Positions 4,332-63,111 of a DNA stretch of 64,000 nt are shown here, piece after piece. Origin of the DNA: Salpingoeca rosetta (taxonomy: Eukaryota > Protista > Choanoflagellata); contig JAWQFM010000014.1 of NCBI GenBank assembly GCA_033442325.1, positions 495,265-559,264 of the forward strand, given 5' to 3'. The notes beneath the pieces were generated by a model, which was given only the letters and a program-made list of their open reading frames with translations, had not been told where the DNA came from and made no database searches. The position numbers were made by a program, and so were the translations under genes. How positions within the stretch are numbered: the stretch's first letter is position 1; every line of letters begins with the position of its first letter.

Positions 4332-7300
4332 ATGATGCGTGGTAGACGCTTGCCGACAACGGCAGGCGTTGCCGGCGCCTCACAATGGACAACCTTCCTT
4401 CTTTTGTTCCTGTTAGTGATGGTGGCCTCGGCGTCCTCCGCAAAACGGCAACAACAAGCGCACCAAAACGACTCCTTGCCCCACAGAGCGCACAGGGCGC
4501 AGCGTGGCAATGGTTTACATCCCACTGCTGAGCTGAGGGATCCTGCGTTTCATCGTCCACTTCCACGATCTATGACAACGCAACCAAGAACGCACAAACA
4601 GTCGCAGTCATGGATGTCCCAAACGCACGCACTGGACAATGCCTTTACCGCAGGCCTTGCATGTTCAGCAGAGAACGCTGCGCAGTGGATTCCCACTGGC
4701 TGTGCCAAAGACTTGTACATCTGCCACGACGCCCGAGTTGCCCTTGAGGTCGTCACGGAGGCAATTCTCTTGACCACAAGGAGCGAAGAGGAAACGCAGG
4801 AGGAGAATTCGCAGGAGGAGGTGGTTGCAGACCACAACGGCGACAAGCTCCCCATGCATGCGCACTTGCATGCGTTGCAGCGCGTCATCAACGCCCACTG
4901 CCAACAACAACAACACCAACAACACCAGCAGCAGCAAGGAGGGCAAGGAGAAGACACCGACGACAACAGCAGCGCCATCCACAAGGCTGTCGCACGAGCT
5001 GCTCTTCCGCTGCAACATGCCTCGCCTTTCCCTCTCCTTACCCAGCAGTATCAGCGTCAACAACAACAGCAGCGGCGGCGGAGAGACGTTGTGGCAGAAG
5101 CAGAGCCCCCCGCGGACTTTGTCTTTGACCGCTGCACCGCTTCAGCGATCATCAAAGGCAATTGCACGGTGCCCGCTTCTGAAGACACCATCGCTGGCGG
5201 CACGTTGACCATTGCATTTGATGCACCAAACGACGCCACAGCCCTGCTGGAGGAGATCGAACCCAGCTCGGAAGCTGCCACTGCCGCAGCTCAACTCTGC
5301 AACTCATTGCAGCCGCGTGCCTTGGTTATCGCGGGCACCGTGCACAACACCGATTTGGAATGGGTACTGAGCCACACACAGTGCACAACAGTCCAGCGTG
5401 TGAACGTCACAGGCCTGCTTGGGCTAGAATTCTTCTGCAATGCCTTCAACCCGCTGATGAGTATTCTAAAAATCGAGATCCGTGATAGCAAGACGATACG
5501 CCTCATGGAACGCGAGAACAATACGCAGCCGCATTTCGTGTTGGCACACCAGGTCACCCGCTTCACGCTGGAGGGCACGCGCGTGCGGACAGTGGACCCC
5601 AGCTTGTTGAACGCCATGCACAAGCTCGTGCACCTGCGTATTCGCAACAGCCAACTGACAGAGCTTTCGCCCGACATGTTCTTGAACCTGAGCTCTCTGC
5701 AAGTCCTCAATTTGAGACGCAACCTCATTTCATCAATTCGCGAGCGTGCTTTTGACTCATTGACGTCACTTCGCAGCTTGAGCCTTGGCCATAATGACCT
5801 CACCGCCTTGCCAGAGGCACTGTTCCGCCGAACAACCAACCTGAGGGTTCTCGTGCTCCAAATCAATCAGCTCAGCACGCTGCCACCACAACTACTGGCA
5901 TCTTTAACACGACTTGAGAGGTTGTTATGCAGCCACAATGTCCTGAGCTCCCTTCCAGCGAAGTTGTTCAAGGCAACCTCAGCATTGAAATTCTTGTTCT
6001 TGGATTGGAACAGACTGGCACGACTTCCAAGCGGCGTGTTCTCGCCTCTGACAAACCTTCGCGAGCTCAGAATCAGAAACAACGTGCTCACCGAGGTCAA
6101 TCAGGCATGGTTCGCGCCGCTGCATCCAGAACTGACGCGCCTTTGGCTGACCAACAACCTCATCACGCGTATCAGCGTACACGTTCGCCGCGTGTTTCCT
6201 GGATTGATGTCGCTTCATCTCCAACACAATCGCTTAAACTGCTTGGAAGCAGAGTAATTCCGGAATCTGACGCGCCTTCAAGCGTTGCATGTGAGCAACA
6301 ATAGACTGACATTCATCCCCAACACGGCTTTACAGAACATGCCTTCTCTGGAGCGCCTATCTCTCGGCAACAACAAGCTCACAGTGTTTCCCCGTCGATC
6401 GTTTCCGCGCCTCTTATCCCTGCGCCTGGACAACAATCCACTTGAGCAGGTTCCAGACGTGACGGGCCTCACTCAGTTGCAGGAGCTTCGCTTCAACAAT
6501 CACAAGATGACCAACATTGACATGACCGGCATCCTTCAGCTGCAAGAGTTGTGGTGGCTTGAGCTCACTGCCCACGCAAGCGTGAAAGATGCAACCCTGG
6601 ACATTGGTTCTCCGAGAGGCAGTGGTGGCGGCCGTGGGGCAGGGAGATCACAACTCAAATGGAGACGTGTAGATGCACGCAACATCAACTTGCAGCCCTT
6701 TTTTGGATTGGATCGGTCGACACGCCTTCAGCTGACAACCCTTTATCTCGGATGGCCGGGCATGAACAACCACGCTGTCCAGCTCAACACCCTGTGCAGC
6801 GTTCTTGCCCCTTCAGTTGAAAGTTTCGGGCTGGAGAACACGGCCTACACGCATATTGAGCTGTGCGAAGGACACACGTTTGACAACGTTTTCCTCACAC
6901 GCAACACTCACCTTCAGTCCGTGGCGCTCTACTCTCCGGTCCAAGTCCTCAATGTCTCTGGCTGCGCAAGCTTGGAAGACTTGCGTGCTCCCTCCATTCA
7001 AGTGTTCGATTTGAGCCACACGCGTCTTTCCAATACGCGTCAGCTCTGCCGAGACTGGGGTTCTCTGACGGTTGTGGCACGCAATTGGCAGCTGCCAGAG
7101 ATGGAAAGACTGGACAAAGCTCAGCGACTTTTGTTGCAGTGTCTCGCCTTCAGTGAGGTTGAATTGTTGGACCTGAGCCATAACCTGTGGATTTCACACT
7201 TAACGCGAATCAGCACGGCAATCTCCAGGGTTGTTGTCTCCAACACCCGCGCCGTCTACACGACAGATCAACGTGTGCGTATCCCAGCTCGTGAGAAGAT

Positions 7301-9205
7301 GCCTTCCCTGGCATTGATTGGCTCGCCTGTGACATGTCAGGTCAAGGCAGAGACAATTCGCACCTTGCACTTCCGCACTGTATCATACGAGCTGGGATTC
7401 GGCCTCGATTGTTTGTGCTCGAATGGATATGAACTGCGTGGCTCAGAGTGCAAGGAGCAAGGATCTGACCACCTCGCCGTTGCGTTGGGCACTGTTGCCG
7501 GTGTCTTGGCGCTGCAAGGCGTGCTGTTTGCGCTGTTCCGCTGGTATCGCCGGCACAAGCAGTTGCGCGCCGAGCACGCCCTCAACATGCAGCTGCTCTC
7601 CGAGAAGGACGCGGAGGTGCTGGCGCTCAAGGCAGTGTGGGACATTCCGTTTGAGGAGCTTGACCTGTACCGCGAGCTGGACAGTGGTGCGAGCGGCGAC
7701 GTGTGGGAGGGCGAGTGGGACTCGGTGCATGTGGCGGTGAAGGTGCTGAAGCTGGGCAACGTGTTCCTGGACGCTGCGACGCAGCAGGAGTTTGAGAAGG
7801 AGGTGGCGTTCTTGCAGCGCACGCGGCACCCGCACCTGGTTCGCTTCTTTGGCGCTGGCACAAACCCGGTGACTGGCGCGCCATTTCTGGTGCTGGAGTT
7901 TATGGCGCTCGGATCCTTGCGCCAGCTGCTGCAGCGCAACCTACGAAAGGTGTTGGCAGAGACCAACAGCACCAGCGCTTCCACAAGCGCAGAAACTGCT
8001 GCACCGACAAGTGAGGACTTGGATGACTACACAGTCGTGTCATCAACCAGGCACTCGGTGCAGCCTGGTCTCTTGACTGTGTGGGCGCTGAAAAAACGCC
8101 TCGCTGCGGACATTGCATCTGGCATGGCGTTTATCCACAGCCTCGGCAAACTCCACAGGTGACCTTGCGTGTTTTGTTGGGGGGGGGGGGTTTGGGGGTT
8201 GGTGAGTGTGTGATGCGTGTGTGTGCATGTGTGATCTGTGCGTGTGCGTGAGTGTTGTGTATGTGTGTGAGTGTGCGTGCGTGACATGTGCGTGCGTGCG
8301 TGTGTGTGTTATGTTATTTCCTGCTTGCGCCCTCCTTTCTTTTCCATATGCCTGCACTCAATGCACACATTCTGCACACAACGTAATGCACGCATGCACC
8401 CCATCATACACAGAGATCTGAAGAGCGGCAATGTGCTGGTGTCGGCGAACCTGCGGGCAAAGATCACGGACTTTGGAACCGTGACCCAGCGCCTGAGTTC
8501 ACAGCAGGTGCATTCTGCGGGGCCACACCGCAGCGGCGGAGGCGGCTGGTTTGGCCTTGGCTTTGGGCTCCCCGGCACCCACAATCACAGCAGCGACAGG
8601 AGAATGAGCAACAACAACAACGACAACGACGACGACGACGACATAGGCAGCAGCGGCAACGACAAAGACAGTAATGGCAGTTCAAGCGTGCTGGCTGGGG
8701 CTGGGTTATCGTCGTTGACCACACCAGCGTCGTCGTCACGTGGTGGCGATTCAGAGGCAGCGCAGGCTATGCTGCTTGCGGCGGCGGCTGATGGTGCTGC
8801 TGTGAATGACGATGTTGCGTACGACGAGGAGGTGGCTGGCATGACGATGAGCATGACCATGACAGCCGCTGTTGGCACGCCGCTGTACACTGCGCCAGAG
8901 GCGCTGACGGGGACAGCGTACGACACCAAGGCCGACGTGTTCAGCTTTGGGGTTGTGCTGTGGGAGATTGTGACGCAGCGGAAACCCGACTTGATCAAGC
9001 AAGAGTTTGGGGACGGGTTCTGCGGCCCGATGCTGTCCACCCTCGCATCCTTGCTTGCATCCGGCAAGCGGCTCCGCTTCCCTCCATCTTCAGGTGAGAA
9101 GGGAGGAGGGGATGATAAGAGACGGGGGTGAAGAGGAGTTTGGGGGTTGGAGGGGTGAGGAGGAGTTGTGGAAGTTGTGTGTGTGTGTGTGTGTGTGTTT
9201 GTATG

Positions 9206-9244
<39 letters not shown>

Positions 9245-9579
9245 TATGTGTGCTTGTGTGTGTGGTGTATGCTGTTTGTACTGCGCTGTGTTAGTATGCT
9301 CTTTGTTTTTCTTTTTTCAACACTCCCCTGCCAGCCTACCTGCCTACCAGCCCACCGTCCTGCACCCCAGTGCATGCACAGCACAGCACCTCTTGTCCCC
9401 AGCTCCTCATAATACCAGAACATCACAATGCCTACTGCTTTGGTTGTGCAGGCAATGAGGAAGCGGCGGAAGTGCTGTTGCGCAACCTGGCGCAAGAATG
9501 TATGGCACAGGAGGCCAGGGAGCGCCCCACCTTCCAGCAGCTGAAGGAAAAGCTGCTCGCAGCTCTACCCGGCTCTTAG
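4332..9579 (+). pseudogene. LRR-TM-protein kinase (TKL-type) receptor, copy 1, interrupted by one in-frame TAA at 6255-6257; exons 4332-8158, 8414-9093, 9452-9579
   Basis: Signal peptide (FLLLFLLVMVASASS), RRRR site, multiple 24-aa LRRs, EGF-like CLCSNGYELRGSEC, TM (VALGTVAGVLALQGVLFALF), VAVK, HR|DLKSGN, DFG, APE, DVFSFG. ORFs 4332-6257 and 6285-8162 are the same frame and the LRR register continues across the stop (LEAE*FRNLTRLQALHVSNN). The stop could be a sequencing error. Confidence 0.8.
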
Positions 9580-9994
9580 GCTGCGATGCTTGACATGACT
9601 GGGGCTACTGCAGCCCCCTTGTTCCTTGGAAGATTGGATCTTTTGCTTGTGGCGCCTTAGCGCCTTGTTGTGTTCTCTTCTTGAGTTGTCCGTGGTGCCT
9701 TAACTGTGACACAACCCACAAGTCGTGTTCCTTCAACATTGTTCTTGTGTTCTCCTGTTGTGCCACGAGTAGCACTGCGTTCTTGCGTTGCGGCGTTCAA
9801 CTGAAGTGAAGTGAAGCGAGGAAGCGCGCTCCCCTTTCTTTGCAGCCTCTTCGCAGCCTCTTTACGACCACGAGTGTCTGACCCTGAGTTTAGGGTCCGT
9901 TTCCTTCGCCCTCCTCCAAAACAAACCCCAAAACAGCACAGCAGCACAAAACCAGCAGCACTGCCTCCATTTCCTCTGCAACCAACCCCCGAAG

Positions 9995-10636
9995 ATGAAG
10001 CTGGCTGTTGTTGTTGCTGTCCTTGCCTGTGTGGCTGCGGCCAACGCCGTCCCCACCAAGACCCTCCGCTTTGCTCACGACATCCTTGGTCTCGAGAGCA
10101 TCGCCAATGACATCAACGCACGCAACGTCGGGTGAGTCGGGCATCAATCAAGCGCTGCAGCCCACCGTGTTTCCTGGTTTGCCATGCACGTCGCCCGTGT
10201 TCACTGGCAAATGAATGTCGGTGCGATTGATCCACATCTCACGTCGTGCCGTCGTGCCGTCATGTCGTGCCCACCACCACCACCACCACCACCACCACCA
10301 CCACCTTTGATGGTTCATGTTGCTTTAGCTGGAAGGCCGGCGTGAACGAGCGCTTTGTGAACGTGACCATGGACTACATTCGCAAGCAGATGGGTACCCG
10401 CCTGGAGGGCTCCCCTGTGACGCTGGATGTGAAGCACGTTGAGGTCCCCGCCGATCTTCCCACCTCGTTCGACTCCCGCACCCAGTGGGGCAGCATGTGC
10501 CCCAGCGTGAAGGAGGTCCGCGATCAGGCCAACTGCGGTAGCTGCTGGGCCTTTGGCGCCGTCGAGGCCATGACCGACCGCACGTGCATCGCCAGCAAGG
10601 GCGCCCAGACCCCCCACATCTCCGCCGAGGGTGCGT

Positions 10637-10681
<45 letters not shown>

Positions 10682-11489
10682 GTGGGCACACGGCCCTTTT
10701 CCTGTGCTTTGTCGCCTTCTGCTCTTGTATTCATGTGTGGCATTGGCGTCGTTCCATTGCCTGTATCTGTCTGTCTGTCTATCTCTCTGCCTGTCTCTCT
10801 CTCTTTCGCTCTCTCTCTGTCTCCCCTCCCCTCTCCCTCTCCCCTCACTCACTCACCCACCCACTCACTCACTCACTCACTCACTCACTCACTCACACGC
10901 AGATCTGCTGACGTGCTGCACCTTCACCTGCGGTGATGGCTGCAACGGTGGTTACCCTGCCGCTGCCTGGGAGTACTGGAAGAACCAGGGCATTGTCACC
11001 GGTGGCCAGTACGACTCCAACCAGGGCTGCCAGCCATACAGCCTTGCCAAGTGCGAGCACCACACGACCGGCCCGTACAAGCCCTGCGGCGACATTGTCC
11101 CCACCCCTGCCTGCAAGCGCTCCTGCCGCCAGGGCTACAACGTCACGTACCCGAACGACAAGCACTTTGGCGCCTCCTCGTACGGCGTGCGCGGCGTGGA
11201 CCAGATTGCCACGGAGATCATGACCAACGGCCCCGTTGAGGCCGCCTTCACCGTCTACAGCGACTTCCTCTCCTACAAGTCTGGCGTGTACCAGCACACC
11301 TCGGGCCAGCCCCTTGGTGGCCACGCCATCAAGATCATCGGCTGGGGTGTCCAGGACGGCACCGACTACTGGATCGTCGCCAACTCCTGGAACGATAGCT
11401 GGGGGAATGACGGGTTCTTTTGGATCAAGAAGGGCACGGACGAGTGCGGCATTGAGTCCCAGGTCGTCGCTGGCCTGCCCAAGGTCTAA
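9995..11489 (+). CDS. CTSB: Cathepsin B (papain family C1A), 3 exons
   Basis: Signal peptide MKLAVVVAVLACVAAANA; QANCGSCWAF catalytic Cys; GCNGG; occluding loop CEHH; GGHAIKIIGWG; YWIVANSW. GT-AG introns at ~10132-10328 and ~10631-10902. Confidence 0.96.
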
Positions 11490-15116: not shown

Positions 15117-16048
15117 GACGCTATGCTTCGTCAACTACGCTGCTTCCTCTCGTCCTCTGCACTTGTGTCTCACAACAACAACAGGCACAACAACGTCTGC
15201 TCCTTGTGCTTGGCGCGCTCGTTCCGTTTTGCTCGTTGTTTTTTTTTTTGCCACGAGTGGTTTATGAGGTTTTACCCACTGCGCAAAACCTTGAAGCTCG
15301 TTTTTGTGGGGTCTCCGACGTCATTTTGATTGACGAGCATTTGCTGGCATCTTCAAAGAATGCTCTGCGCCCTTTCGCTTCACAAAAAATGACGTCAGCG
15401 TGCCCAACCTTTGATCGCATGCACTTTTAACTTCAAATTTTTCTTCTTTTTTTTTTTCCCTTCCTCCACCCAACCAGAAGAAACCAAAAGCAACAAAGCA
15501 GAGACAGAGCGCCACCTGTTTCCTGCAACAGGTCTGCTGGTATTCTCTCTCCTGTTCTTGCTTCATGGCCCTTGTTTGCTTGACAGTGCTGCGACCAGAC
15601 GGCCACGCAATCGAATGCGCCTGCCACCCGCCAGCATTCAATCTTACACCCATTTGCACACCCCTCGCGTTGTCGCCTCGCTCATCTCAGCGCTATCATC
15701 ACATCACATCATCAGCCTCGTCCGTGGCTGCGCTGGCGTTGCTCCTGCTTCGTTTGCGTGTGTGTATGTGTGTGTTCCCTCAGCCACGCACACTTGGATG
15801 CATTCTCCCATGAGCCAAACAACAACAGCTGGGCCTGAAACCGATCTCTGATTAGCCTCCCACACCTTTTGTTTGACATTGTTTTGGTTGTTTTCAGCCT
15901 TACTTGCCTTCCTTGCCTTCCTTGCCTTCCTTGCTTCCATCCGTTCCCTTCCCTTCCTCCCTGAACAACCAAGTTAGCAAGCCAGCGAGCCTTGCACCCA
16001 GCAACACCCCCCCCCCCGAACTGCTCACATTCAGTGCATGCAGAGTGC

Positions 16049-17492
16049 ATGCATAATCGTGGGCCCCACCGCGTTCCCTCCACCTCGCAACTACAACATA
16101 CACAGCTGTTTGGCATGCCGACTTCCCCATCAGCTACAGCAACTACAAAGGTGGAGAGCCTGCTGTCGCCGTCGACCATCAACGGCGCTGCGTTTGCACT
16201 GAACGGCAGCTCCTTCAACACCGCTCACAACACTACCAGCAGCAAAAGCAACAGCAAGAGCAACGGCAACACCAACAGCAAGAGCAACGGCAGCAGTGGC
16301 ACCAACGCCACCGAAGACGACAGCAGCGATGGCAAGCACGTTTGCCACGCCTGCGGCAAGGACTACTCGCGGCGATCGGACCTCGTCGTGCACCTGCGCA
16401 CCCACACGGGGGAAAAGCCGTTTGTGTGTGACAAGTGCAACAAGTCCTTCACCAAGAAGAGCCACCTCACGCGCCATCGCAAGATCCACACCGGCGAGAA
16501 GCCCTTCTCCTGCGGCTTCTGCGGCAAGAAGCACGCGCGCATGAGCGACCTCAAGGTGCACCTGCGCACCCACACGGGCGAGCGGCCATACTCGTGCTCC
16601 ATCTGCGGCAAGTCGTTTATCACGTCCAGTCACGTGCGCATGCACGAGCGCACGCACGACGACGCGCGACACTTCTCCTGCCCGCTCTGCTCCAAACCGT
16701 TCAAGACAAAGCCGGGCCTGAAGCAGCACCTCAAGACGGGGCACAACGCAGACCCCGAGCGCGTGAAGCAGCTGTGCGTCGGCATCCCCTACGCTCGAGC
16801 TGTCGCACCCACCCCTGCAAAGCAGAACCGCGCCAGCACCGGCTCATCCACTGCATCCAGCACACAAGGTCGCCAGGCAGACGCCACCACCGCTGCGGCT
16901 GCCAGCGACCAGAAGCGTTCGAGGAGAGGCCGCAGCACAAAGGCCGCATCACATGCGTCCGCATCGTTGTCGTCGACAGCAGCAGCCGGCACAACGGCGA
17001 TACCAACGTGTTTGGCATCTGCGCCCCCCTTGTCGAGCAGTGGCCTGCCCCCGCTGTTCACCTCCGCGTCTGCGTTTCCATCAACGCCCATGTCGCCCTC
17101 CGATGTGTTGCTGCAGTCGTTGACCAGCGGCGCCACCGCAGCCACGACCACCGCACAACAGCAGCAGCAACCACGGCAGCAACAGCGACAGGGAAGGTTT
17201 GAGTTTCCGTCAAACACCATGGCACCCTCTCTCTCTGCCGCAAGCCTTCAGCAACAACAACAACAACAACAATCGCAACCACCGCAACAGCAGCAGCCGG
17301 CGGGGCTAGTCATGGCGGATGGGGACACAAAGATTTCGCTGTCGACCCTGCAACAGCTGTCGCCGCAACTCATTGCACAGCTGCTGCAGCTTGGCATCAT
17401 CTTACCCACGGGCCAGGATGCTTTTGCTCTCGCGCCACACATGGCGGCAAACGCAAACGCAAACGCCATTAGACAACCACAACAACAACAGC

Positions 17493-17573
<81 letters not shown>

Positions 17574-23605: not shown

Positions 23606-23694
<89 letters not shown>

Positions 23695-34719: not shown

Positions 34720-34793
<74 letters not shown>

Positions 34794-42333: not shown

Positions 42334-42422
<89 letters not shown>

Positions 42423-42615: not shown

Positions 42616-42660
<45 letters not shown>

Positions 42661-48600: not shown

Positions 48601-51600
48601 GCGCTGACGAGCACGGCCTTGAGGGAGCGCAGGCCAAAGTCGTAGTGCGACTGCGCGGAGAGCTGCTCCTGGCACAGGATGAACAGGGGTACGACCTTGC
48701 GCGAGAGCTGCTCCGCGGTGCGGAACCCCTGCGAGAAGAGCATAACCTGGGCAATCAGCTGCCTGTCCGGCTTGGTCATGGCCAGGTTGCGGAAGAGCTT
48801 CTTGAGGTTGTCCGGTAGCGGGGAGCGGCCCGCGTAGCCCGGGTTCATGGTGATGAAGATGGCCATGCTCGGGTTCACGGACACGGTGCGGCCTTGAAGC
48901 GACACGGTCATGGCCTGGCGGGCGGCCTCGCCCTCCAGCATGCCGCCGGCCTTGATGGCCAGCTGGATGCTCTCAATCTGCTGCGACACCGCCGAGAGCA
49001 TGCTCTCCTCCAGGCGGTTGAACTCGTCAAAGCAGCCCCACGCGCCCACCTGGCACAGGCCCACGAAGATGCGGCCCATGGCGTGGTTGTCAAACGTCTC
49101 GTCGCAGTTGAACACCAGCACGAAGCGGCCCAGCTGCGCGCCAAGCGCCTTGACAGACTCCGTCTTGCCCGTGCCTGCGGGGCCAAAGGGGCTGCCGCCC
49201 TGCCGGGCAGCGAGGGCCTGTGTCATGGTGAGGAAGCAGCGGTCCGTGAGCGGCGTCTGCACAAGCTTGTCCACGAGCCCCAGGTACTCAAACCCGTAGA
49301 AGAGGCTCACGTCCGCCATCTTGATGGACAGCTGCTGCAGCACGTCCGTGTTGTACGCGTCAAACTCAAAGCGCATGTTCTGCAACCACCTAAAGTCGGT
49401 GACGGCCGCCACGCGCTCGTCAATGAGGCCGCGGGTGAGGTCGCGCTTGTGCACGAGCTCCGTGATCATCTGCTCCAGCTTCTTGCGGCGGATGGGCGGC
49501 TGGTGCTGCAGCACCGTGTCGGCCAGGGCGTTGAGGGTGGTGATGACGGCGTCCAGTTGCTCCTTCAAGCCCTGCTTGCCGCCGCCCGAGACGAGCGCCT
49601 GCTGCACGCTCTCGGACCACGCCACCTGCGCGCTGAGCACGACAATCTGCGCCTGGAAGGCGTCGAGCCACTTGAGGTAGGAGGAGAGCTCAAAGGAGGT
49701 GGCCAGGTGCTTGATCTGCGTGGTGGAGCGGTTGAGCAGCGAGGCCAGCGCCACCTTCATCTCCTCCTCCAGCGCGGTGAGCCAGGCGTTGATCTTCCTG
49801 TCCTTCACCTGCACGTTGTTGGTGAAGGGGACCACCTCGCCCTCGCGCGAGAGCAGCGCCTTTGCGGCGTCGCCCTGCTCCGTCAGCTCGACGCTGTTCA
49901 GGCCCGCGAACATCTTGCGGAAGTGCTTCTGGATGCGGTCCACGTTCTTGCCGTTGCCGATAATGTCAAGCAGGTCCTCGTCGCCCACAAAGTAGAAGCG
50001 CGGGAACGACGCGCGCTCCTGCTCCAGGTACTTGCTCAGCGCCTTCTGGATCTTGTCCAGGACGTCCTTGAAGTGGTGCAGCGTGCGCTCGAGGTTGGGG
50101 ATGTTGAGCACCTCCAGCACCATCGGGTTCTTGGACACCTTGCGCATCAGCGCCACAAACTCGTTGCTCAGGCCCATAAACTTGTTTGTCTCCGTGGGCA
50201 GGAGGACCTTGAGGTCAGCGCTGCCGGTGAAGATGCCCTCCAGGTACACCCACTGGCGCTGCACGTCGATCCACACGTCGTAGAAGAGGGTGTACAGGGT
50301 GTTGAGGCGGTTTTCCCAGGCCAGGGCCTCCTCCTCAAACACCTTGTAGTAAGGGGACAGCTTCATCTGCGCCAGGTTGTTGATGTGGTCCTTGGCCAGC
50401 GTGAAGAGGTCGTCCCAGCCCTTGATGAGCTTGGTTTTGTTCTGGTAGTTGACCATCTCCAGCTCGTACGCCTGCCAGGCCTCCTTGATCTGCTTCAGGA
50501 ACACCTCCAGCGCCTTCTCGCCCTGCGCCTGCAGCACGACGCGGTTGATGGCCTCTGCGTTGCGCTCCAGGTCCACCGCCCACACCTGGCCCAGCGTGAG
50601 CGTGACCATGTCCCACGACACGCCCAGCTCCGAGGTGAGCATCTTCCAGTGGCGGCTGGTGAGCGTGTCGCCGCGCAGCACGCTGATGGTCTCGTTGACC
50701 TTGATGTAGGAGCGCGCCTGCTGCAGCAGGTACTCGTAGGCCTCGTACGACTTGACGCGCGCGGGCATGCGCTTGAGCTCGTCCACGATGCCGTTGAGCT
50801 GGCTGCGCAGCTTGGTGGGCACGACGGCGCCCCACTCCGTGGCCTTGAGGTCGGACATGTGCTCCACGACGCGCGACAGGTCGTGCCAGGAGCCCTTGAG
50901 CTCCATCAGCTCCTCCATGCGCGAGGGCAGCCGCGTGTCCTCCTTGATGTCCAGGTCGAGCGCCGTCTTGGCGCGCACCAGGTTCTCGTACTCGTCCCTG
51001 AGGCGGGTGAACCTGCCCTGGAAGATGTTGAGCACGTTGACGGCCTCGGCCGGGTTGACGTCGCCGCCCATGGGCTTGTTCTTGTCCCAGTCCGCCACCA
51101 GCTCCGCAATCTGCGCCTCAATCTGCCGCTCCTCGGAGACGACGCGCATCTGCAGGCTGGTCACCTGGCCCGCAATGGCCGTGTGCCTGCGCTCCAGGAT
51201 GCTCAGGAACGCCTCCCACTCGCCCTCGAGCTGCTGCACGCGCAGCCAGTCGCTGGGGAAGGGGAACCGCTGCCGCTCCAGCAGCTTCTCGCCAGAGACG
51301 AAGCACTCAAACTGGGCGGTGAGCGGCTTGACGCGCTTCTTGGCGCCCTGGATGACGCCAATGTAGGTGATGCTGTCGGATGTCTTGGCAGCCTCCAGCG
51401 ACATGGCCTCCAGCTTCTCCCGCAGGCCGTGCACCTCGTTGTAGAAGCGGGACATGTGGTCGGCCATGGACGTGGCAAAGTGGCCGATAATCTCGCGGTG
51501 GATGGCGTCGTACTTCATGGCCACGCGCGTCTGCACCTGGCTGTACTCAATGTCCACCGCCGCCAGCGCCTTGCTCGTCTCGGACGTGTCAAAGTGGCGG

Positions 51601-54284
51601 CGCGCGCGCTTGATCTCCGTGAGCAGCTGCTGCCACGCCATGAGGTCGTCACCGAGGGAGGCAAACACGTTCTCCATCTGCAGGTCCCACAGCGACTGGT
51701 ACTGCAGCCACTCGCCCACGTACGCGTCAACCTTGCCCGTCTCCACGTCAATCAGCCGGTGCGCCTGCACCAGGTCGGCGCCGTCGTTGGGCAGCTTGGC
51801 CAGCAGATTGCCGTACTTGGCCACAGACTTGGTGGCGTTGGCCGTGTCAAGCGGGTCCGTGTGCAGGCGGGCGAGGCTGGTGACCACGGACAGGTGCACC
51901 TGCAGCTGCTGCACCAAAGCCTGGCGTGCGCTCTCCACCGGTGGGGTGAGCATGATCACCTGGTTGCGAATCTGCAGCTCGTGCTTGGCGCGTGCAATCT
52001 CGGGCAGGTCCTCGTCGTCCTCCACGTCCGCGTCCCAGCTCTCCGCTGCACGAGAGGCGTGGGCGAGCGCCTTGGTCCACGCTACGAGCGCGTGGTGCAG
52101 GCGTGCCGCGAGCTTCTGCTCCACCTGCGCATTCAGGTCATCACACCACTGCTGCAGGTTGACGTACTTCTCGGCCTTCATCTTGTTCAACACGTCCTGC
52201 CCACGCTTGATCAAATCCTGCAAGGTGAAGAAAACGGGGGGGAGGGGATGTTGAGTGAGGTGAAGGAAGAAAGAGTGTTGAAACAGGAGAAGAAGGAGAT
52301 GCGAGGGAGTGTGGAGTGTGTGTGTTGTTGTTGTTGAGAGGCAGGGAAAACGCATGAACCAAACACGTGCACACATGCACAACACAGGCACGCACAAAAC
52401 CAAACACGCAAACACAAACACACAACCCCAAACACATCAACACACATAAGCACACAACCCCAAACACATCAACACACATAAGCACACAACCCCAAACACA
52501 TCAACACACATAAGCACACAACCCCAAACACAATTAGCACACCAACACGGGAGCGGAACGCACTTGGAATTTCTTGTTGCTGTAGTCGCAGGTGGTGAGG
52601 GAGGTGAGCATCTTCTTGATGCGGTCGTCATAGCCAAAGAGCGCCTGCACGCGGCGGTGCAGCTCGGTGACGTTTCGTGAGAGCTCGTACGCATACGCCT
52701 CCAAGGGGCTCTCCCAGGTGAGGTCCATGCCGTAGGCAATCTGGTCGTGCACGCGGTTGTACCAGCGCGCAACGAGCGGGGTGAGGTGCGGCCTGTCGTC
52801 CAGCTGGTTCATGGCGATGGAGTACGTCTTGATGCTGTTCTTGAGGGAGATGACATACGGGTACAGCATGTTGGCCTTCTTGGCCTTGACGACGGCGAGC
52901 TTGGGCACGCGGGGCACGTTCTTGAGCCAGCCCATGATGCGCACCTCCTTGGCCATGGTGATGAGGCGCTCGTGGAAGTTGACAAACATCTCCAGGCGCG
53001 TCTTCTCGCCGCGGAACAGCTCAATGTCGAAGATGGTGTTCTTGAACGTGATGTCCTGCGTCTCAATCTCCTGCAGCCAGAGGTCGTACGGGTTGGCCTG
53101 GCGCAGCTTCTCCTTGAACGTCTCGCCGCGCTCCTTCAGCTCGCGCCCGTCCACGTGCTTCATCCAGTTGGGCCCGAGCACGTGCCCGACGCGCTCCAGG
53201 TAGTCGTCGAGCTGCCGCTCAATCTGCGCCATCCAGATGATCTGCCCAGAGGTGGGCGGGATGTCGCGGGCCGCGCTCATGTGGCTGTTGTTGCTGTTGT
53301 GGTACTGCATCTTGAACTTCTTGTGCAGCTCGATAATGTCGTCCTTGACGTTGGACATGAGCTGCTTCTGGTACGAGCGCACGGCGTTGCGGATGCGCGG
53401 GCGGTCCAGCAGCGCGTAGTAGTGGCGGAAGATGCGGAACATGTCCGACGACTTGGCTGCATGGTCAAGCTCGTGGCACAGGTGCTTGATGATGGTGTCC
53501 TCCACCTGGTTCACGCGCGCCTCATAGCTCTCGCAGGCGCGGTCCCACGCCCGCTGGCCCTCCTCCTCCAGGTCAAGCACGTCCACGCTGCGCATCTCGT
53601 CGTACGCGTTCTCCACCTCGGCCAGCGCGTTGTCCTCGTCCGCGTCGGGCTCAATCCCGCGCTGCTTCAGCACCACGGAGATGCGCTGTTTGAGGTCGTC
53701 ATGGCGCAGCCGAAAGTCGTGCACGAGGGCAAGCCGCTCCTGCAGGGCCTTGTGCTCGGGGACCACACGCCGAGCAGTGGCCCGCCCGCCGCGCTGGGTG
53801 CTGCGCAGCTCCTGGATGATGGTGCGGAAGTCGGACTTGTCGTTCCACTCGCGGAAGAGCTGGTTGCACTGGTTGTACAGGTTCTCAAACTCGGGGATGG
53901 GCATGTGCATGAGCTTCTTCTTGGAGAGGATCTTGAGCAGCTGGCTGTTGACGTCGCGGGAGATGGCCTTGATGAGCTCAATAAACCGCTCGCGCGGGTA
54001 CCGCGTGTGCTTCACCTTCTTCATGTGCTGGAACACCTCCAGCATGGCCTCCACAAGCTTCTTGATGTCCGTGGCAATGAGGATGGCGTTGATCGGGAAG
54101 TCCTTCATCAGCGTGTTGTAGTCCAGCACGGTGTCGTACATGGACAGGTTGGTGTCTGTCTCAAAGCTCTTGAGGATGGTCAGTCGCTTGGCCTCCCGCA
54201 GCACTGCCAGCGTCAGCGTCACGTCGTCCTCGGCCAGCCGCACCTTTAGCTGCGACAGTGCGCGCTCCATCGACAGCCAGAACC

Positions 54285-54349
<65 letters not shown>

Positions 54350-55225
54350 CGTGCGTGTGTGTCATGTGTGTGTGTCATGCACGTGTCATGCACGAGCCAT
54401 GCGCGTGAGAGCAACTTACAAGCGTCAACAAGGGCCATGCAGAGCTTGTAGTACATGCCGGCCTCGTAAGGAGTGTGCTCAATCTGCACCGCACGACACG
54501 ATTGGAATGTGTTTGTTTTGGAGGGAGGGAGGAGCAGCAACCGTCGTGGGAAACATCATGCATGAGGCACCATGCGGTGTGTTGACGCACACACATGCGT
54601 AGCAGCAGCAACAGCAGCAGTAGCACCAGGGCATGTGGGGGACAGACAAGCACGCACACACAAGCACAGACAGACATACACACCCACACCCACACATACC
54701 CACACATACACACACACACACACATGCAAACACACACACGCCCGCACACATCAAATACACAAGCAACACACGCCATAGCAGCACATACGTCATTCACATC
54801 GAAACATGTAGCGGGGGGAAGCACACCGCATTCTTCGGGGATGGGCATGTGCATGAGCTTCTCTGGAGAGGATCTTGAGCAGCTGCTGTTGACGTCGCGG
54901 GAGATGGCCTTGATGAGCTCAATAAACCGCTCGCGCGGGTACCGCGTGTGCTTCACCTTCTTCATGTGCTGGAACACCTCCAGCATGGCCTCCACAAGCT
55001 TCTTGATGTCCGTGGCAATGAGGATGGCGTTGATCGGGAAGTCCTTCATCAGCGTGTTGTAGTCCAGCACGGTGTCGTACATGGACAGGTTGGTGTCTGT
55101 CTCAAAGCTCTTGAGGATGGTCAGTCGCTTGGCCTCCCGCAGCACTGCCAGCGTCAGCGTCACGTCGTCCTCGGCCAGCCGCACCTTTAGCTGCGACAGT
55201 GCGCGCTCCATCGACAGCCAGAACC

Positions 55226-55302
<77 letters not shown>

Positions 55303-57329
55303 AAGGGGGTTCGTGTGTAAATTGGTGAGCGTGTGTGGTGAGAACTGAGTGCGAAGAAACAGCATTGTGACAAACTCACAGATGAAGCCACAGCCTCAGA
55401 GATATGTGGCACACCCACACCACATAAATGCACACGCACACAGGTTGCGCACAGGTTACGCACATGCATGCACACATGCACCCACACGAAGACGGACACA
55501 TGCACACTGCACCTGATTTCCTGGCGCGCGCTGCCTGTGGAGAGGTCGCGTTCGAGGCGGGTGACCTGCTGAATGTCCTTGATCCAGCGCAGCACCACCC
55601 GCTCAAGCGACTTGACGTACGCGTCGTCGTGCACCAAGTCCCCCATGTCAGCAAGCGTCGGGCTGCGACCGGCCTTTCGCGCCTGTTTGGGAAACACAGA
55701 GGAGGGATGGGCGGAGAAACGTGTATTGGTGCGTCCGTGAGGCAATTGCTCGACCGCGCAGTCATCATCACACGCACACACGCACACGCACGCACGCGCC
55801 GCACGTGCGCGCGCGCGAACATAATGCACCGACGCAGACACACACGCGAACGCACACACGCATACAGATCACGCAGCGCCATGCACCGCACCTCGGAGAC
55901 CGCGGCGGCGATGGCCTTCTCAGGCACAATCTCAATCTGGGGAATGTCTGTATCCTGCTGCAGATGCGAGAGGAGTGTTTCCAGCTCGTTGATGGCCTTG
56001 CTCGCAGGCTTGATGCTCTCCTTGTCGGCAGCACCGGACCCTTTTGCCAGGCTGTTGAAGAATGGTTGTACGTATTGCTGCACCAGCGCATGCAGCATCC
56101 CAAACGGCTTGCCTGGCGGGTTGTGCGTGTATGTATGAGAGTGTGTGCATGAGTGTGTGTATTTGTGAACGTGTGTTCGTGTTTGGTCGTGTGTGTGTGT
56201 ATTTGTGAACGTGTGTTCGTGTTTGGTCGTGTGTGTGTGTGTGTGTGTATTTGTGAACGTGTGTTCGTGTTTGGTCGTGTGTGTGTGTGTGTGCTTGTTT
56301 CTGTTTGTTTGTACTTGTTAAGACGACGTGTGTGAGGGATGCAGTCAGCATGGCCAAAGTCTCCAGTACATGCACAGGAATGGCGCTCGATCCTTGGTCA
56401 TGTGCACCACAACTCACCGTCAGAGAAGACAACACAGTGCAGCTGCAGCGCCAGATCGTTGGGCGCGAGCGGGTCTTTGGGATTCTTCTTCACAAAGGCA
56501 CATGCTGCGTAGCTTGCACCTAAGCTCTTGATCTGTGTGCGTGTGTGTGTGTGTGTGTGCGTGTGCGTGTGCGTGTGCGTGTGTGTATGTGTGTGAATAC
56601 GTGAGCGAGTGTGGTTGTGTGTAAAGGCTGCCATGGGTCAGTGTCAACACCTGCGAACACAATACTTCAGCAAACCCACCTCATCCGTGATGATGATCTC
56701 TTGTTGGTCGTCTTGGTCACCTAGAGGTTCAATTGAGCCAGTGGATGCAAAATGTGAGCACAAGCGCAAACACACAACATACACACATATACACGCACGC
56801 GCACACAGACTGGGATGGGATCCAACCAAACACTGCTGCGTCAAACGCAAACAGCTGCCAAGAACGCACTTTTGCCTGTGTTTCGGTGGACCATGAGCGC
56901 TCGCTTGTTTGGATCGGCGGCAAAGCTACACAAGTGGAGAGAGTGCGTGTTTGTGCGCACGTGAGGGACAAGAGTAGGTGTGGAGTGCGAGAAGCGTGTG
57001 TGTGTGTGTGATGTGAAAGTGCAAGCGACCCAGCAAGACATGGCAAGAAGGGGGGGGGGGTTCACTTGTTTGTGCCGCACACCCAGACACAAAGCACACA
57101 CACGCACGCACAACACAAACACCACATATGGCCATAATGAATGCACAGAGGTTTGCTGCAAAGGAGTTCACCTGGTGAGGAGTGGCTCTGCCTCTGCCAG
57201 CGTGTCAGCGAGGCTGGCTTCGCCGCCACCAAGTAGAAGTGGCACAACATCGCGAAGATAGTCCACAATCTCTTTGGTATCAATGACCTCGGCAACATGA
57301 TCCGTGCCGTTCAGCTCCTCCGCACTCAT
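39382..57329 (-). CDS. DYNC1H1: Cytoplasmic dynein-1 heavy chain, multi-exon with a ~9.5-kb central exon (~42681-52217)
   Basis: P-loops [73 protein letters not shown]; C-terminal FYRRGVALMC; N-terminal tail exons up to MSAEELNG at 57329. Confidence 0.97.
41460..41636. repeat. Intronic (AAC)n microsatellite with periodic TTA interruptions
   Basis: aacaacaacttaaacaac units in a dynein intron. Confidence 0.85.
42423..42522. other. Assembly gap (100 N), intronic
   Basis: N run; flanking dynein exons (..GSAD|ARRE..) join without apparent missing residues. Confidence 1.
52421..52532. repeat. Intronic 32-bp minisatellite x3.4 (cacaaccccaaacacatcaacacacataagca)
   Basis: Units start at 52421, 52453, 52485 and 52517 (partial). 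Confidence 0.9.
54834..55300 (-). repeat. Tandem partial duplicate of a dynein exon 5' part plus upstream (CA)n (intact copy at ~53890-54345)
   Basis: About 390 bp (RFWLSMERAL...KLMHMPIPE) occur twice; the upstream copy has small deletions near its end and then runs into unrelated sequence. Confidence 0.93.
56153..56292. repeat. Intronic repeat: atttgtgaacgtgtgttcgtgtttggtc x3 separated by variable (GT)n
   Basis: Directly visible in a dynein intron. Confidence 0.9.
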
Positions 57330-57916: not shown

Positions 57917-60900
57917 ATGGCGACCAGCAGAAGCAAGATGACTAAGGCACAATCCAGACGAACCATCCAAGGCCGATGTAGAGTTGCCGTCAGCCCCAAC
58001 AAGCAGGCTGTTTTGGTCCTGGCAGGTGTCCTGCTATTCTTGCTATTGCCCTTACTCTCGGCAGTTGCCACGCCTGCTACTCCAACTCCTGCCCAACCGC
58101 TTGGCGATGTCGACCTGACAGCGGATGCCCATGAACAAGCCTTGCACGAAGGCAGCACTAGCACTAGCACCAGCACCGAGAGCACCGACAACCACTTCCA
58201 CAGCACCGACGACAACAGTGCAGCCATCTGCCACGACGCCCGAGTCGCCCTTGAGGTCGTCACGGAGGCAATTCTCTTGACCACAAGGAGCGAAGAGGAA
58301 ACGCAGGAGGAGAATTCGCAGGAGGAGGTGGTTGCAGACCACAACGGCGACAAGCTCCCCATGCATGCGCACTTGCATGCGTTGCAGCGCGTCATCAACG
58401 CCCACTGCCAACAACAACAACACCAACAGCAGCAGCAAGATGAAAAACAACAACAACAGCAGCAGCAAGGAGGGCAAGGAGAAGACACCGACGACAACAG
58501 CAGCGCCATCCTCAAGGCTGTCGCACGAGCTGCTCTTCCGCTGCAACATGCCTCGCCTTTCCCTCTCCTTACCCAGCAGCATCAACGTCAACAACAGCAG
58601 CGGCGGCGGAGAGACGTTGTGGCAGAAGCAGAGCCCCCCACGGACTTTGTCTTTGACCGCTGCACCGCTTCAGCGATCATCAAAGGCAATTGCACGGTGC
58701 CCGCTTCTGAAGACACCATCGCTGGCGGCACGTTGACCATTGCATTCGATGCACCAAACGACGCCACAGCCCTGTTGGAGGAGATCGAACCCAGCTCGGA
58801 AGCTGCCACTGCCGCAGCTCAACTCTGCAACTCATTGCAGCCACGTGCCTTGGTTATCGCGGGCACCGTGCACAACACCGATTTGGAATGGGTACTGAGC
58901 CACACACAGTGCACAACAGTCCAGCGTGTGAATGTCACAGGCCTGCTTGGCCCAGACTTCTTCTTCAACACCTTCAACCCGCTGACGAGTATTCTAAAAA
59001 TCGAGATCCGTGATAGCAGTTTTGTGCGCTTGGCTCAGAACAACCAGGATGCATCCCCCCATCAGACGTTTGCGCACGCTGGCCAGATCACGTCCATCCT
59101 CACCCACAACACCCTGGTGGGTGGCATAGACCAAGGCGCTTTTGCAGGCATGTCGCAGCTACGCTCACTCACCCTGCAGCGCGGGCGGCTGCGGGAGATC
59201 ACAGCAGAACACTTTGCGGACTTGACCAATCTTCGCACGCTCACTCTGCGCCGCAACCTCATCACACGCATTGCGCCTAACGCCCTCAGCTCAACAACAG
59301 CTTTGGAAAGCCTGGACCTGAATCAGAATGGCTTCGGAGAGCTGCCCGCCACTTTGTTCGAGGCCCCAGTCAATCTCACCTCCATCAACATCGGGGTCAA
59401 CTTCATTGAAACCCTCCCCGAAACCATCTTCTCGAACCTCGCCAAACTGAAGCACCTATCCATCAACAACTGCTTCCTCACCACGCTTCCGCCCACGCTG
59501 CTCCATGCCAACACCATGTTGCACCATATCCACTTGCGAGAAAACAAGTTGGAGGTTCTCCCGTCTGCCGTTTTCTCCAACCTTTCGGCATTGGAAGAGC
59601 TTGACCTGCGCCGCAACTATTTCACAGAGATTGACCTGTCTTGGTTTGCGGCCGAGATGCCAGCTCTGAAGTCGTTTGACTTGAGCCAGAACAACATCGA
59701 GGTACTGCCACAGAACTTGCTGGCAGCTTTCCCTGCCCTTCGAACGCTCCAGCTCCAATCAAACGCGCTGACGAATCTTCAACCAGGAATCATTTCTGAG
59801 CACTCCCAGCTTGTTTCCATTGACCTCAGCTACAATCAATTGGTCCAACTTCCACCTGATTCGTTTCGCAGCTTCCCAAACCTTGAAAGGCTCGCACTCT
59901 CCAACAATGCATTGGAGGTCTTTCCTCACAATGTGAGCCTGCCCCAGTTGAGAATTCTTCGACTTCTGAACAACCCCCTCAAAACAGCGGTTGATGTGCA
60001 AAGGCTTCAACGCTTGGAGGAGCTCCGTTTCAACGGGCACTTGTTGTCAAAAGTTGACATCACACCGTATTTGAACCTGCATCGACTCCACTCCCTATCG
60101 GTTCGACCAGCCACTTCTCTCGAGAGCACTCTCATTTTTCACGAAGGCAGGATCAACACCACGAACCTTTGCCGCCTGCGACACCTGAACATTCGGAACA
60201 TGCACTTCTCTGGTTTCCTGAGATGGCTGGTTCAGCACCAGGTTCAACTTCGCAGCCTCTACGTCGGCGCCCCACATATGAATGCCATGACAGCCCCTGT
60301 TAGTGAAATATGCAGTGCGTTGGCATCAGACGTGGAAAGCCTCGCCATCATCAACACCGCTTACGAAGAACTACGTCTGTGTCCAAACACCTCCATCCAA
60401 GCCGTGTTTCTCGATCAAAATCACGCTTTGACGACCGTTGAGGTGGAGTCTCCGACTCGCACCTTAAACGTGTCATCCTGCCCAAACCTGGAGACAATTC
60501 ACGTGCCAGTGGCCGAGGTGCTAGACATCAGTCGCACCAAGGTCCCTTTCCAACGCGGGTTCTGCCGCACACTCGGCACGCGCGTCCTGGTCGCACAGCA
60601 GTGGCAAGAGCGCGGCAAGCCCGACGTTCAGCGGCTCTCGCCATTGCTTCTGCAGTGCATTGTGTTTAGCGACGTTGAGGTTGTGGACCTGAGCGACAAC
60701 GACTGGATCGACCAGCCGCACCTGCTCAATGCGCCACTCAACAGACCGGTGGCGTTTCGGAAAGACCAGCCAGACGCTGCATTGTTTGGGGTGGTGCATT
60801 TCCGGCAAGTTATCCCCAGCATTGAGCTGTTTCGATCCCCGGTGGAGTGTCGACTGCGTGTTACGACTCAACCTACGGGGGAATCACGCACCATCCACAC

Positions 60901-63111
60901 AAGAGTATGGGACACAGTGTTCCTGTTTCGCTGTCAGTGCTCATCTGGTTATATCGCAAGAGGAGACAAGTGCATCAAGCAGACAGACAACCCCGTGCCG
61001 GTTGCGTTGGGCACTGTTGCCGGTGTCTTGGCGCTGCAAGGCGCACTGTTTGCGCTGTTCCGCTGGTATCGCCGGCACAAGCAGTTGCGCGCCGAGCACG
61101 CCCTCAACATGCAGCTGCTCTCCGAGAAGGACGCGGAGGTGCTGGCGCTCAAGGCCGTGTGGGACATTCCGTTTGAGGAGCTTGACCTGTACCGCGAGCT
61201 GGACAGTGGTGCGAGCGGCGACGTGTGGGAGGGCGAGTGGGACTCGGTGCATGTGGCGGTGAAGGTGCTGAAGCTGGGCAACGTGTTCCTGGACGCAGCG
61301 ACGCAGCAGGAGTTTGAGAAGGAGGTGGCGTTCTTGCAGCGCACGCGGCATCCGCACCTGGTTCGCTTCTTTGGCGCTGGCACAAACCCGGTGACTGGCG
61401 CGCCGTTTCTGGTGCTCGAGTTTATGGCGCTCGGATCCCTGCGCCAGCTGCTGCAGCGCAACCTGCAACAGGTGTTGACAGAGACCAACAGCACCAGCGC
61501 TTCCACGACCGCAGAAACTGCTGCGCCGACAAGCGAGGACTTGGATGACTACACAGTCGTGTCAACAACCAGGCACTCGGTGCAGCCTGGTCTCTTGACT
61601 GTGTGGGCGCTGAAGCAGCGGCTCGCTGCGGACATTGCATCTGGCATGGCGTTTATCCACAGCCTCGGCAAACTCCACAGGTGACCTTGCGTGTTTTGTT
61701 TGGGGGGGGGGGGTTTGGGGTTGGTGAGTGTGTGATGCGTGTGTGATCTGTGCGTGTGCGTAAGTGTAATACGTGTGTGTTGTGTATGTGTGTTGTGTGT
61801 GCTTTTGTGCGTGCTTTTGTGTGCTTTTGTGTGTTGTGTATGTGTGTGAGTGTGCGTGCGTGACATGTGCGTGCGTGCGTGTGTGTGTTATGTTATTGCC
61901 TGCTTGCGCCCTCCTTTCCTTTCCACATGCCTTCACTCAATGCACACATTCTGCACACAACGTAATGCACGCATGCGCCCCATCGGACGCAGAGATCTGA
62001 AGAGCGGCAATGTGCTGGTGTCGGCGAACCTGCGGGCAAAGATCACGGACTTTGGAACCGTGACCCAGCGCCTGAGTTCACAGCAGGTGCATTCTGCGGG
62101 ACCACACCGCAGCAGCGGAGGCGGCTGGTTTGGCCTTGGCTTTGGGCTGCCCGGCACCCACAATCACAGCAGCGACAGGAGAATGAGCAACAACAACAAC
62201 GACAGCGACGACGACGACATAGGCAGCAGCGGCAACGACAAAGACAGTAATGGCAGTTCAAGCGTGCTGGCTGGGGCTGGGTTATCGTCGTTGACCACAC
62301 CAGCGTCGTCGTCACGTGGTGGCGATTCAGAGGCAGCGCAGGCCAGGCTGCTTGCGGCGGCGGCTGATGGTGCTGCTGTGAATGACGATGTTGCGTACGA
62401 CGAGGAGGTGGCTGGCATGACGATGAGCATGACCATGACAGCCGCTGTTGGCACGCCGCTGTACACTGCGCCAGAGGCGCTGACGGGGACAGCGTACGAC
62501 ACCAAGGCCGACGTGTTCAGCTTTGGGGTTGTGCTGTGGGAGATTGTGACGCAGCGGAAACCCGACTTGATCAAGCAAGAGTTTGGGGACGGGTTCTGCG
62601 GCCCGATGCTGTCCACCCTCGCATCCTTGCTTGCATCCGGCAAGCGGCTCCGCTTCCCTCCATCTTCAGGTGAGAAGAAAGGAGGGGGTGATAAGAGACG
62701 GGGGCGAAGAGGAGTTTGGGGTTGAGGGGTTGGGAGGGGGTTGGAGGGGGTGAGGGCGAGTTGTGGAAGTCGTGTGTGCTGTGTGTGTGTGTATGTGTGT
62801 GTGTGTGTGTATGCTGTTAGTACTGCGCTGTTATGATGCTCTTTTGTTTTTCTTTTTCAACACTCCCCTGCCAGCCTACCTGCCCACCGTCCTGCACCCC
62901 AGTGCATGCACAGCACAGCACGTCTTGTCCCCAGCTCCTCACAATACCAGCGCATCACAATGCCTACTGCCTTGGTTGTGCAGGCAATGAGGAAGCGGCG
63001 GAAGTGCTGTTGCGCAACCTGGCGCAAGAATGCATGGCACAGGAGGCCAGGGAGCGACCCACCTTCCAGCAGCTGAAGGAAAAGCTGCTCGCAGCTCTAC
63101 CCGGCTCTTAA
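57917..63111 (+). CDS. LRR-TM-protein kinase (TKL-type) receptor, copy 2, intact; exons 57917-61680, 61993-62669, 62984-63111
   Basis: Uninterrupted 1255-codon first ORF with signal peptide, RRRR site, LRRs, CQCSSGYIARGDKC, TM and kinase N-lobe; HR|DLKSGN, DFG, APE; same intron positions as copy 1. Confidence 0.92.

Follow-up and report, generated by a model that had tools for sequence, protein, structure and literature searches.

The window analysed here is a 64,000-nt stretch of the choanoflagellate Salpingoeca rosetta genome (assembly GCA_033442325.1, contig JAWQFM010000014.1, positions 495,265 to 559,264, forward strand). It contains two genes, here called A and B, that each encode a leucine-rich repeat (LRR) ectodomain, a transmembrane (TM) helix and a TKL kinase. 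Closely similar sequence, introns included, flanks an LRR block of about 2 kb that has diverged to saturation between the two genes. A and B are probably an old duplicate pair whose flanks have been homogenised repeatedly by interlocus gene conversion, that is by regional concerted evolution, with the LRR block having escaped. The parts of the two genes, all on the + strand, are as follows.

4332-9579, +: gene A, LRR-TM-TKL kinase (open reading frames (ORFs), translation, Pfam, annotated protein); public model P0002, 1302 aa, 'TKL protein kinase [Salpingoeca rosetta]' (annotated-protein match)
4332-8158, 8414-9093, 9452-9579, +: exons of A (splice sites read from the sequence, annotated protein)
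8159-8413, 9094-9451, +: introns of A (splice sites read from the sequence)
4332-4717, +: 5' coding part found in A only, containing a hydrophobic stretch like a signal peptide, unalignable with B 57917-58224 (p = 0.63)
4718-5490, +: constant N block of A (blastn and substitution rates, below)
5491-7478, +: variable LRR block of A
6255-6257, +: in-frame TAA inside the LRR block of A (translation, paralogue alignment)
7479-9585, +: constant 3' block of A, comprising TM helix, juxtamembrane part, kinase and both introns and ending 6 nt beyond the stop codon
57917-63111, +: gene B, LRR-TM-TKL kinase (ORFs, translation, Pfam, annotated protein); public model P0001, 1522 aa, 'serine/threonine protein kinase' (annotated-protein match)
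57917-61680, 61993-62669, 62984-63111, +: exons of B (splice sites read from the sequence, annotated protein)
61681-61992, 62670-62983, +: introns of B (splice sites read from the sequence)
57917-58224, +: B-specific 5' coding part, signal peptide or anchor (translation, unalignable with A)
58225-59018, +: constant N block of B (blastn, synonymous divergence, edge scan)
59019-61000, +: variable LRR block of B (protein alignment, synonymous divergence, structure model, Foldseek)
61001-63117, +: constant 3' block of B, comprising TM helix, kinase, both introns, stop codon and 6 nt beyond (blastn, synonymous divergence, edge scan)

When A was compared with B by blastn, three stretches matched: A 4718-5490 with B 58225-59018 (94.6% identity), A 7476-8314 with B 60997-61843 (93.7%) and A 8249-9585 with B 61828-63117 (93.5%), gap columns being counted. 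No match was found in the LRR middle between the shared blocks. With gaps left aside, mismatches amounted to 2.2% in the N block, 3.5% in the TM-kinase part of exon 1, 0.9% in exon 2 and 2.3% in exon 3. Both introns fall within the shared 3' block in the global alignment; their mismatches were about 8-12%, partly reflecting misaligned microsatellites, and about 7-8% outside the microsatellites. A preliminary description of this DNA, made from the sequence alone, had called the 5' and 3' blocks and their introns near-identical. Blastn and global alignment bear out the blocks and their high similarity, but the exons carry about 1-3.5% substitutions plus indels, so that the wording overstates what is not identity.

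The middle of the genes is of nearly the same length in both (1988 nt in A, 1982 nt in B), with 53% DNA mismatch. Its protein identity is 34.5% over 653 aligned residues, no nearer than that of A or B to other family members (28-38%), and the earlier estimate of one-third identity with little DNA similarity was accurate. All four block edges are abrupt (4718/58225, 5490/59018, 7479/61001 and 9585/63117). The 3' switch at 7479/61001 lies in the first residues of the TM helix, at B aa 1029, where a modelled helix runs from B aa 1026, as had been described; the shared sequence ends 6 nt beyond the stop codon. Between the genes, no alignment is possible for the 5' coding parts (4332-4717 and 57917-58224) or for the 3' flanks and untranslated regions (UTRs). 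Synonymous (dS) and nonsynonymous (dN) divergence, their ratio omega, and the proportion of synonymous differences (pS) were estimated by the Nei-Gojobori method.

All constant coding sequence: dS 0.054, dN 0.012, omega 0.22
N block: dS 0.046, dN 0.015
TM-kinase part of exon 1: dS 0.094, dN 0.016
Exon 2: dS 0.018, dN 0.006
Exon 3: dS 0.070, dN 0
LRR middle: pS 0.78 (saturated), dN 0.76

The proportion of synonymous differences is thus 0.78 in the middle, against 0.05-0.09 in the flanks. Simple duplication followed by drift does not yield a flank dS of about 0.05 and shared intron sequence beside a saturated middle, a point on which the preliminary description was right. Divergence is also patchy inside the constant blocks, at 0.9-1.3% in 4718-5400, 7479-7882 and 8414-9101 versus 5.8-7.8% in 7883-8413 (Fisher p 1e-5 to 1e-8). 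Adjoining sub-blocks at about 1% and at 6-8% are therefore better explained by several exchange events of different age than by one. The omega of 0.22 in the constant blocks indicates that, since the last exchange, purifying selection has acted on both copies most of the time.

The 55.4-Mb genome was then searched with each block. In the DNA search that had been proposed for the constant blocks, these occurred in A and B only; the next-best kinase match was 75% identical over 458 nt, and the remaining N-block matches were CAG repeats. That the constant blocks are a module shared by the whole family was rejected on this result. Six-frame protein searches with the LRR blocks returned about 75-80 full-length paralogous loci at 26-42% identity. 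They revealed no donor of the A or B LRR block above about 42% amino-acid identity, and no partial LRR cassettes or cassette arrays, only full-length paralogues. With other loci of the family, the DNA similarity of A and B starts at the TM helix (with L003 at A 7477 and B 60988; with others 30-130 nt further on), remains at 67-80% through the kinase exons, and is essentially absent upstream of the TM. The stretch from TM to stop codon is therefore the only part in which paralogues can still pair, and homology alone can place the 3' edge. The position of this switch may accordingly have been set by homology rather than by function, with selection also possible.

Separate trees were built for the TM-kinase and the LRR blocks, as had been suggested. 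The TM-kinase tree joins A and B as sisters with full support (100/100), 0.036 apart in path length. The LRR tree also joins them, but weakly (76/86 with 14 taxa; Shimodaira-Hasegawa-like approximate likelihood ratio test support 84.8 with 52 taxa), with a path length of 2.3 and end branches of 1.0-1.3 versus a family median of 0.67. The topology for this pair is therefore congruent between blocks, and the depth differs by about 65-fold; significant incongruence occurs in other pairs of the family. Their sister position in the LRR tree as well argues for old resident LRR blocks and against a foreign block in a young duplicate. The LRR blocks thus look like old resident sequence, not swapped-in cassettes. 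Polarising the A/B amino-acid differences by the family consensus was uninformative; the differences sit at unconserved positions.

The family in S. rosetta comprises at least 52 annotated proteins and about 75-80 matching genomic loci. Its DNA-level analysis covered 14 loci, and the 52 annotated proteins were compared as well. Judged from these sequences, module-wise mosaicism is family-wide, as four pairs of loci illustrate.

L064/L065, dS: N domain 2.96; LRR N half 2.1; LRR C half 0.44; TM-kinase 0.049
L067/L069, amino-acid identity: N domain 70%; LRR N half 91%; LRR C half 92%; TM-kinase 67%
L066/L068, amino-acid identity: N domain 80%; LRR N half 78%; LRR C half 82%; TM-kinase 59%
L066/L069, amino-acid identity: N domain 30%; LRR N half 29%; LRR C half 38%; TM-kinase 78%

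L064 and L065, oppositely oriented and separated by 557 kb, have identical TM-kinase proteins. In approximately unbiased (AU) tests the kinase block rejected the groupings L067+L069 (p 2e-43) and L066+L068 (p 2e-6), and the LRR block rejected L066+L069 (p 0.002) and L064+L065 (p 0.02). In a sliding comparison of L023 and L028, which are 23 kb apart on C24, ectodomain DNA similarity was at random level to about 80 nt before the TM; beyond that point the two were 90-100% identical for 1.7 kb, and then again at random level. L023/L028 and L064/L065 thus repeat the A/B arrangement independently, and L067/L069 have it reversed, with the LRR block more alike than the kinase. Many pairs among the 52 annotated proteins have kinase N-lobes that are 85-97% identical versus LRR blocks at 30-45%. 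Identities of the kinase N- and C-lobes also disagree, being 97% versus 71% for P0099/P0114 and 68% versus 95% for P0079/P0081. Two features of interlocus conversion are found in A and B: tracts with dS of 0.02-0.09 next to saturated sequence, with introns shared, and tracts of different age, about 1% adjoining 6-8%. As a separate observation, L065 (C15:1525969-1530921) has apparent tandem copies of a kinase N-lobe segment at 3577-3937 and 4316-4646, which several paralogues match twice.

Gene conversion or recombination between paralogues, one of two processes put forward in the preliminary description, is the best explanation for the dS contrast, the shared introns and the family-wide mosaics. 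A and B would descend from an old duplication within the LRR receptor kinase family of the TKL group. Non-crossover recombination between the two loci would have repeatedly overwritten the 0.77-kb N block and likewise 2.1 kb that begin with the TM helix, take in both introns and end with the stop codon. Overwriting would have spared the 2-kb LRR block along with the UTRs and the signal-peptide region, all of which would have diverged to saturation. Because the LRR block would by now be too diverged to pair, conversion tracts would stop at its edges, giving sharp boundaries. Crossover products deleting the A-B interval would probably be lost, which would leave only non-crossover events, since an essential-looking dynein gene sits between the direct-repeat copies. 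From this pattern we infer the conversion mechanism itself, the direction of conversion, and possibly some help from ectodomain selection in keeping the middle apart.

Four points weigh against this reading. The A and B block trees are not incongruent, depth alone being different. For the N block, no other paralogue has homologous DNA, and the sequence on either side is unalignable; its conversion by homology would therefore require a block that was never allowed to diverge. The A/B junctions and the TAA are seen in the reference assembly, together with the presence of 31-mers in sequencing runs. Finally, the loci analysed at the DNA level number only 14.

The alternative that survives best, though we consider it unlikely, is that most of the gene was duplicated recently (dS about 0.05) and that one copy then had its LRR block replaced by that of another paralogue, the donor having since been lost. 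Sharp edges such as those between A and B would be expected from it, and segment replacement does occur in the family: L067 and L069 have the same LRR block and different kinases, and L066 and L069 have kinase-like sequence in common and different LRR blocks. However, neither block has a donor, the best genome-wide match being 42% at the amino-acid level, and the LRR tree places A and B as sisters. Nor are the signal-peptide region and the 3' UTR related between the genes, so that three replacements, or an in-frame landing inside another gene, would be needed. The cassette exchange that the preliminary description had offered beside gene conversion fares poorly on the same grounds: there is no donor above about 42%, both germline LRR blocks are complete, and the pair shows weak sisterhood in the LRR tree.

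We regard as quite improbable that A and B are ancient alleles of one locus captured in cis by duplication, with balancing selection acting on the LRR blocks and population recombination keeping the flanks alike. The sister position of A and B in all blocks, the very deep LRR divergence and the young flanks are what such a history would leave. Against it, the copies are separated by at least five unrelated genes, one of them for a dynein heavy chain, and the 5' coding part and UTRs are unalignable too. The constant blocks are also patchy in age, which fits repeated exchange after duplication, and the same pattern is seen in other pairs that are far apart and in opposite orientation.

An assembly artefact, in which the assembler paired constant and LRR blocks wrongly, or else collapsed or duplicated a paralogue, is more improbable still. 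The assembly has four scaffold gaps between A and B (26472-26571, 34817-35538, 36405-36504 and 42423-42522). These touch neither gene, and uncertainty is therefore limited to the 53-kb spacing and the scaffold linkage. The constant-block copies differ by 1-8% plus many indels and were hence assembled separately, and swapping the joins between LRR blocks and flanks would still give two mosaic genes. Independent support for the assembly of gene A comes solely from the 31-mers of 4300-9700, of which 85-94% are present in 16 runs from eight studies. L023/L028 show the same pattern at other loci. A search of public assemblies for proteins identical to the products of the long A and B ORFs gave no match.

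Least probable of all is that A and B are recent duplicates in which locally accelerated mutation (targeted hypermutation) diversified the LRR block alone: the sister position in the LRR tree and the long end branches agree with it, but the LRR scaffold is conserved, the signal-peptide region and UTRs are just as diverged, other pairs have intermediate and shifted boundaries as expected of conversion tracts, and we know of no targeted germline hypermutation mechanism in holozoans.

Selection on the LRR blocks was assessed at the exposed x positions of the LxxLxLxxN motif, as the preliminary description had proposed. For the closest pairs, pN/pS was 0.37-0.83 at exposed positions and 0.13-0.22 at scaffold positions. 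In the LRR block, values of 0.30 at core and 0.84 at exposed positions were also obtained. We see purifying selection with relaxed exposed positions. No positive selection was seen at exposed LRR positions, all ratios being below 1 and those of the closest pairs no higher than at other positions, in a crude pairwise test under which site-specific selection is possible; the check thus returned no signal of diversifying selection.

The predicted products of A and B are type I membrane proteins, with a signal peptide, an LRR solenoid of Toll-like receptor (TLR) length, a Cys-rich stalk, one TM helix and a kinase. Pfam identified LRR_8 (up to eight stretches, E 1e-57) and PK_Tyr_Ser-Thr/Pkinase in both. 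Both translations have a hydrophobic N terminus, as read by eye without a dedicated signal-peptide predictor. The TM segment consists of the hydrophobic stretch VALGTVAGVLALQGALFALF followed by RWYRRHK. The kinase catalytic motifs VAVK, HRDLKSGN, DFG and APE are retained in both translations, and the best solved relative of the kinase is CTR1 (Raf-like TKL), with Src-type kinases next, not RLK/Pelle. The constant N block of A comprises helices, a low-complexity poly-Q/acidic stretch, an RRRR motif and irregular N-terminal LRR cap repeats by reference to the AlphaFold2 model, and its LRR block holds 14 regular 24-residue LRRs, irregular C-terminal repeats and the Cys-rich stalk. The AlphaFold2 model was built for B residues 95-1060 from an alignment of 45 family members and has a mean predicted local distance difference test (pLDDT) score of 84, with the solenoid above 90. 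Its parts are as follows.

B aa 95-244: two helices and a disordered poly-Q/acidic stretch
B aa 245-364: irregular cap repeats
B aa 364-700: 14 regular 24-residue LRRs
B aa about 702-950: more irregular repeats
B aa 961-1021: beta-hairpin Cys-rich stalk
B aa from 1026: TM helix

By Foldseek, the modelled ectodomain superposes on the TLR7/8/9 and Toll ectodomains over 720-760 columns, so that it would form a single long LRR solenoid; its fold also matches the LRR structures of LGR and SHOC2. After the poly-Q stretch and just ahead of the folded cap, at about 5030-5060 and 58560-58590 of the window, lies an RRRR run (QQQQRRRRDVV). By its motif, this could be a furin/kexin-type cleavage site that releases an N-terminal pro-region.

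The in-frame TAA of gene A bears on its public model. P0002 hides this codon in a 159-nt GT..AG 'intron' (6177-6335), but in B and all paralogues the same stretch is coding sequence for two LRRs. Since the omega of 0.22 implies purifying selection on both copies, the TAA is recent, a sequencing error, or spliced around. P0002 also begins at an internal Met and therefore does not include the signal peptide encoded by the ORF from 4332. In both kinases a low-complexity insert of about 150 residues lies between DFG and APE, in the activation segment (8414-9093 and 61993-62669). It is kept in P0001 and partly spliced out in P0002; the family consensus after DFG fits the unspliced reading. The public models need revision, P0002 having its stop codon in a doubtful intron and no signal peptide.

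A and B are the only members of the family in the window. At least five genes unrelated to the family separate them, and therefore they are not adjacent tandem copies. Four of the intervening genes are as follows.

10584-11486: papain-family cysteine protease
15992-18229: C2H2 zinc-finger protein gene
21324-24125, -: 2OG-Fe(II) oxygenase gene
42570-55859, -: dynein heavy chain gene

In the 5' part of the minus-strand dynein gene there is a 471-bp direct repeat, 98.7% identical (53891-54361 and 54835-55301), where two neighbouring ORFs both match the start of DHC_N1; either part of an exon has been duplicated here or the assembly is in error. No more than about 50 nt separate the 3' end of this gene from the gap at 42423-42522. 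Two listed ORFs, 34501-35829 and 42274-43206, cross gaps and are artefacts of translating runs of N.

A and B are assigned to the choanoflagellate LRR receptor kinases (LRR-RKs, TKL group) on their predicted features: an extracellular LRR array, a single TM helix with an N-terminal signal peptide, and a TKL-type kinase homologous to the Monosiga LRR-RKs. Seven LRR-RK genes with the same order of LRR ectodomain, TM helix and kinase have been described in Monosiga brevicollis (Dievart et al. 2011, PMC3268121), whereas S. rosetta has at least 52 annotated and about 75-80 loci. The Monosiga proteins MONBRDRAFT_37923, 36839, 25375 and 34096 match the A/B TM-kinase at 36-39% identity (E 3.5e-56 to 5.9e-51), and homologues of this kinase were also found in other choanoflagellates. 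Plant RLK/Pelle and Monosiga LRR-RKs have been placed in separate clades, the latter lineage-specific (Dievart et al. 2011, PMC3268121). The A/B kinases probably also belong to a lineage other than plant RLK/Pelle, judging from the structure match to CTR1 and from that study. Choanoflagellates also have 'Kinase TLRs' of the form LRR-TM-kinase-TIR (Richter et al. 2018, PMC6040629), which resemble A and B in the LRR-TM-kinase order and are choanoflagellate-specific. This identity was rejected for A and B, as no TIR was detected by Pfam in any piece and the proteins end (...KEKLLAALPGS) about 35 residues past the kinase.

A likeness in mode of evolution is found in plants. In plant LRR-RLK and R-gene clusters, among them the rice Xa21 family and tomato Cf-4/9, recombination and gene conversion drive evolution. 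Like the A/B family, they consist of germline LRR receptor paralogues that exchange segments, with sharp-breakpoint chimeras and blocks of different age. The A/B family differs in its kinase lineage and in showing no sign of positive selection at exposed LRR residues. The variable lymphocyte receptors (VLRs) of lamprey and hagfish, to which the preliminary description had likened the pair, also have constant ends around a variable LRR middle. However, a VLR gene is incomplete in the germline and is built up in somatic cells from arrays of partial LRR cassettes, whereas A and B are complete in the germline, with their LRR blocks in one long exon. With no cassette arrays or donors and with constant blocks in only two genes, that analogy does not hold. 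An expansion of LRR receptor tyrosine kinases (RTKs) has been described in Capsaspora, and duplication, gene conversion and the shuffling of domains are said to drive the evolution of ichthyosporean RTKs (Suga et al. 2014, PMC4342544). These too are lineage-specific receptor-kinase radiations with variable ectodomains in unicellular holozoans for which conversion has been invoked. They differ in being tyrosine kinases, whereas A and B are TKL kinases with an HRDLKSGN catalytic loop. In that study conversion is inferred from non-monophyly, with no mapping of tracts, introns or dS. Our literature search found no description of this S. rosetta expansion, of its block-wise homogenisation, or of gene conversion in S. 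rosetta kinases.

For work on this family, the results mean that kinase-domain trees of the S. rosetta LRR-RKs do not record gene history. Block-wise evolution is well known from plant LRR receptor clusters and from animal immune-receptor families, and our reading of A and B would extend it to a unicellular organism related to animals. Specific bacterial molecules elicit responses in choanoflagellates, for which few receptors are known. We suggest, tentatively and as one possibility among others, that the 50-80 LRR-RKs of S. rosetta might form a germline repertoire that recognises bacterial prey or cues, and in which recombination would homogenise the signalling module and selection would keep the ectodomains diverse and reshuffle them. 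A family with homogenised signalling halves and diverse LRR halves is a plausible place to seek the receptors for bacterial cues.

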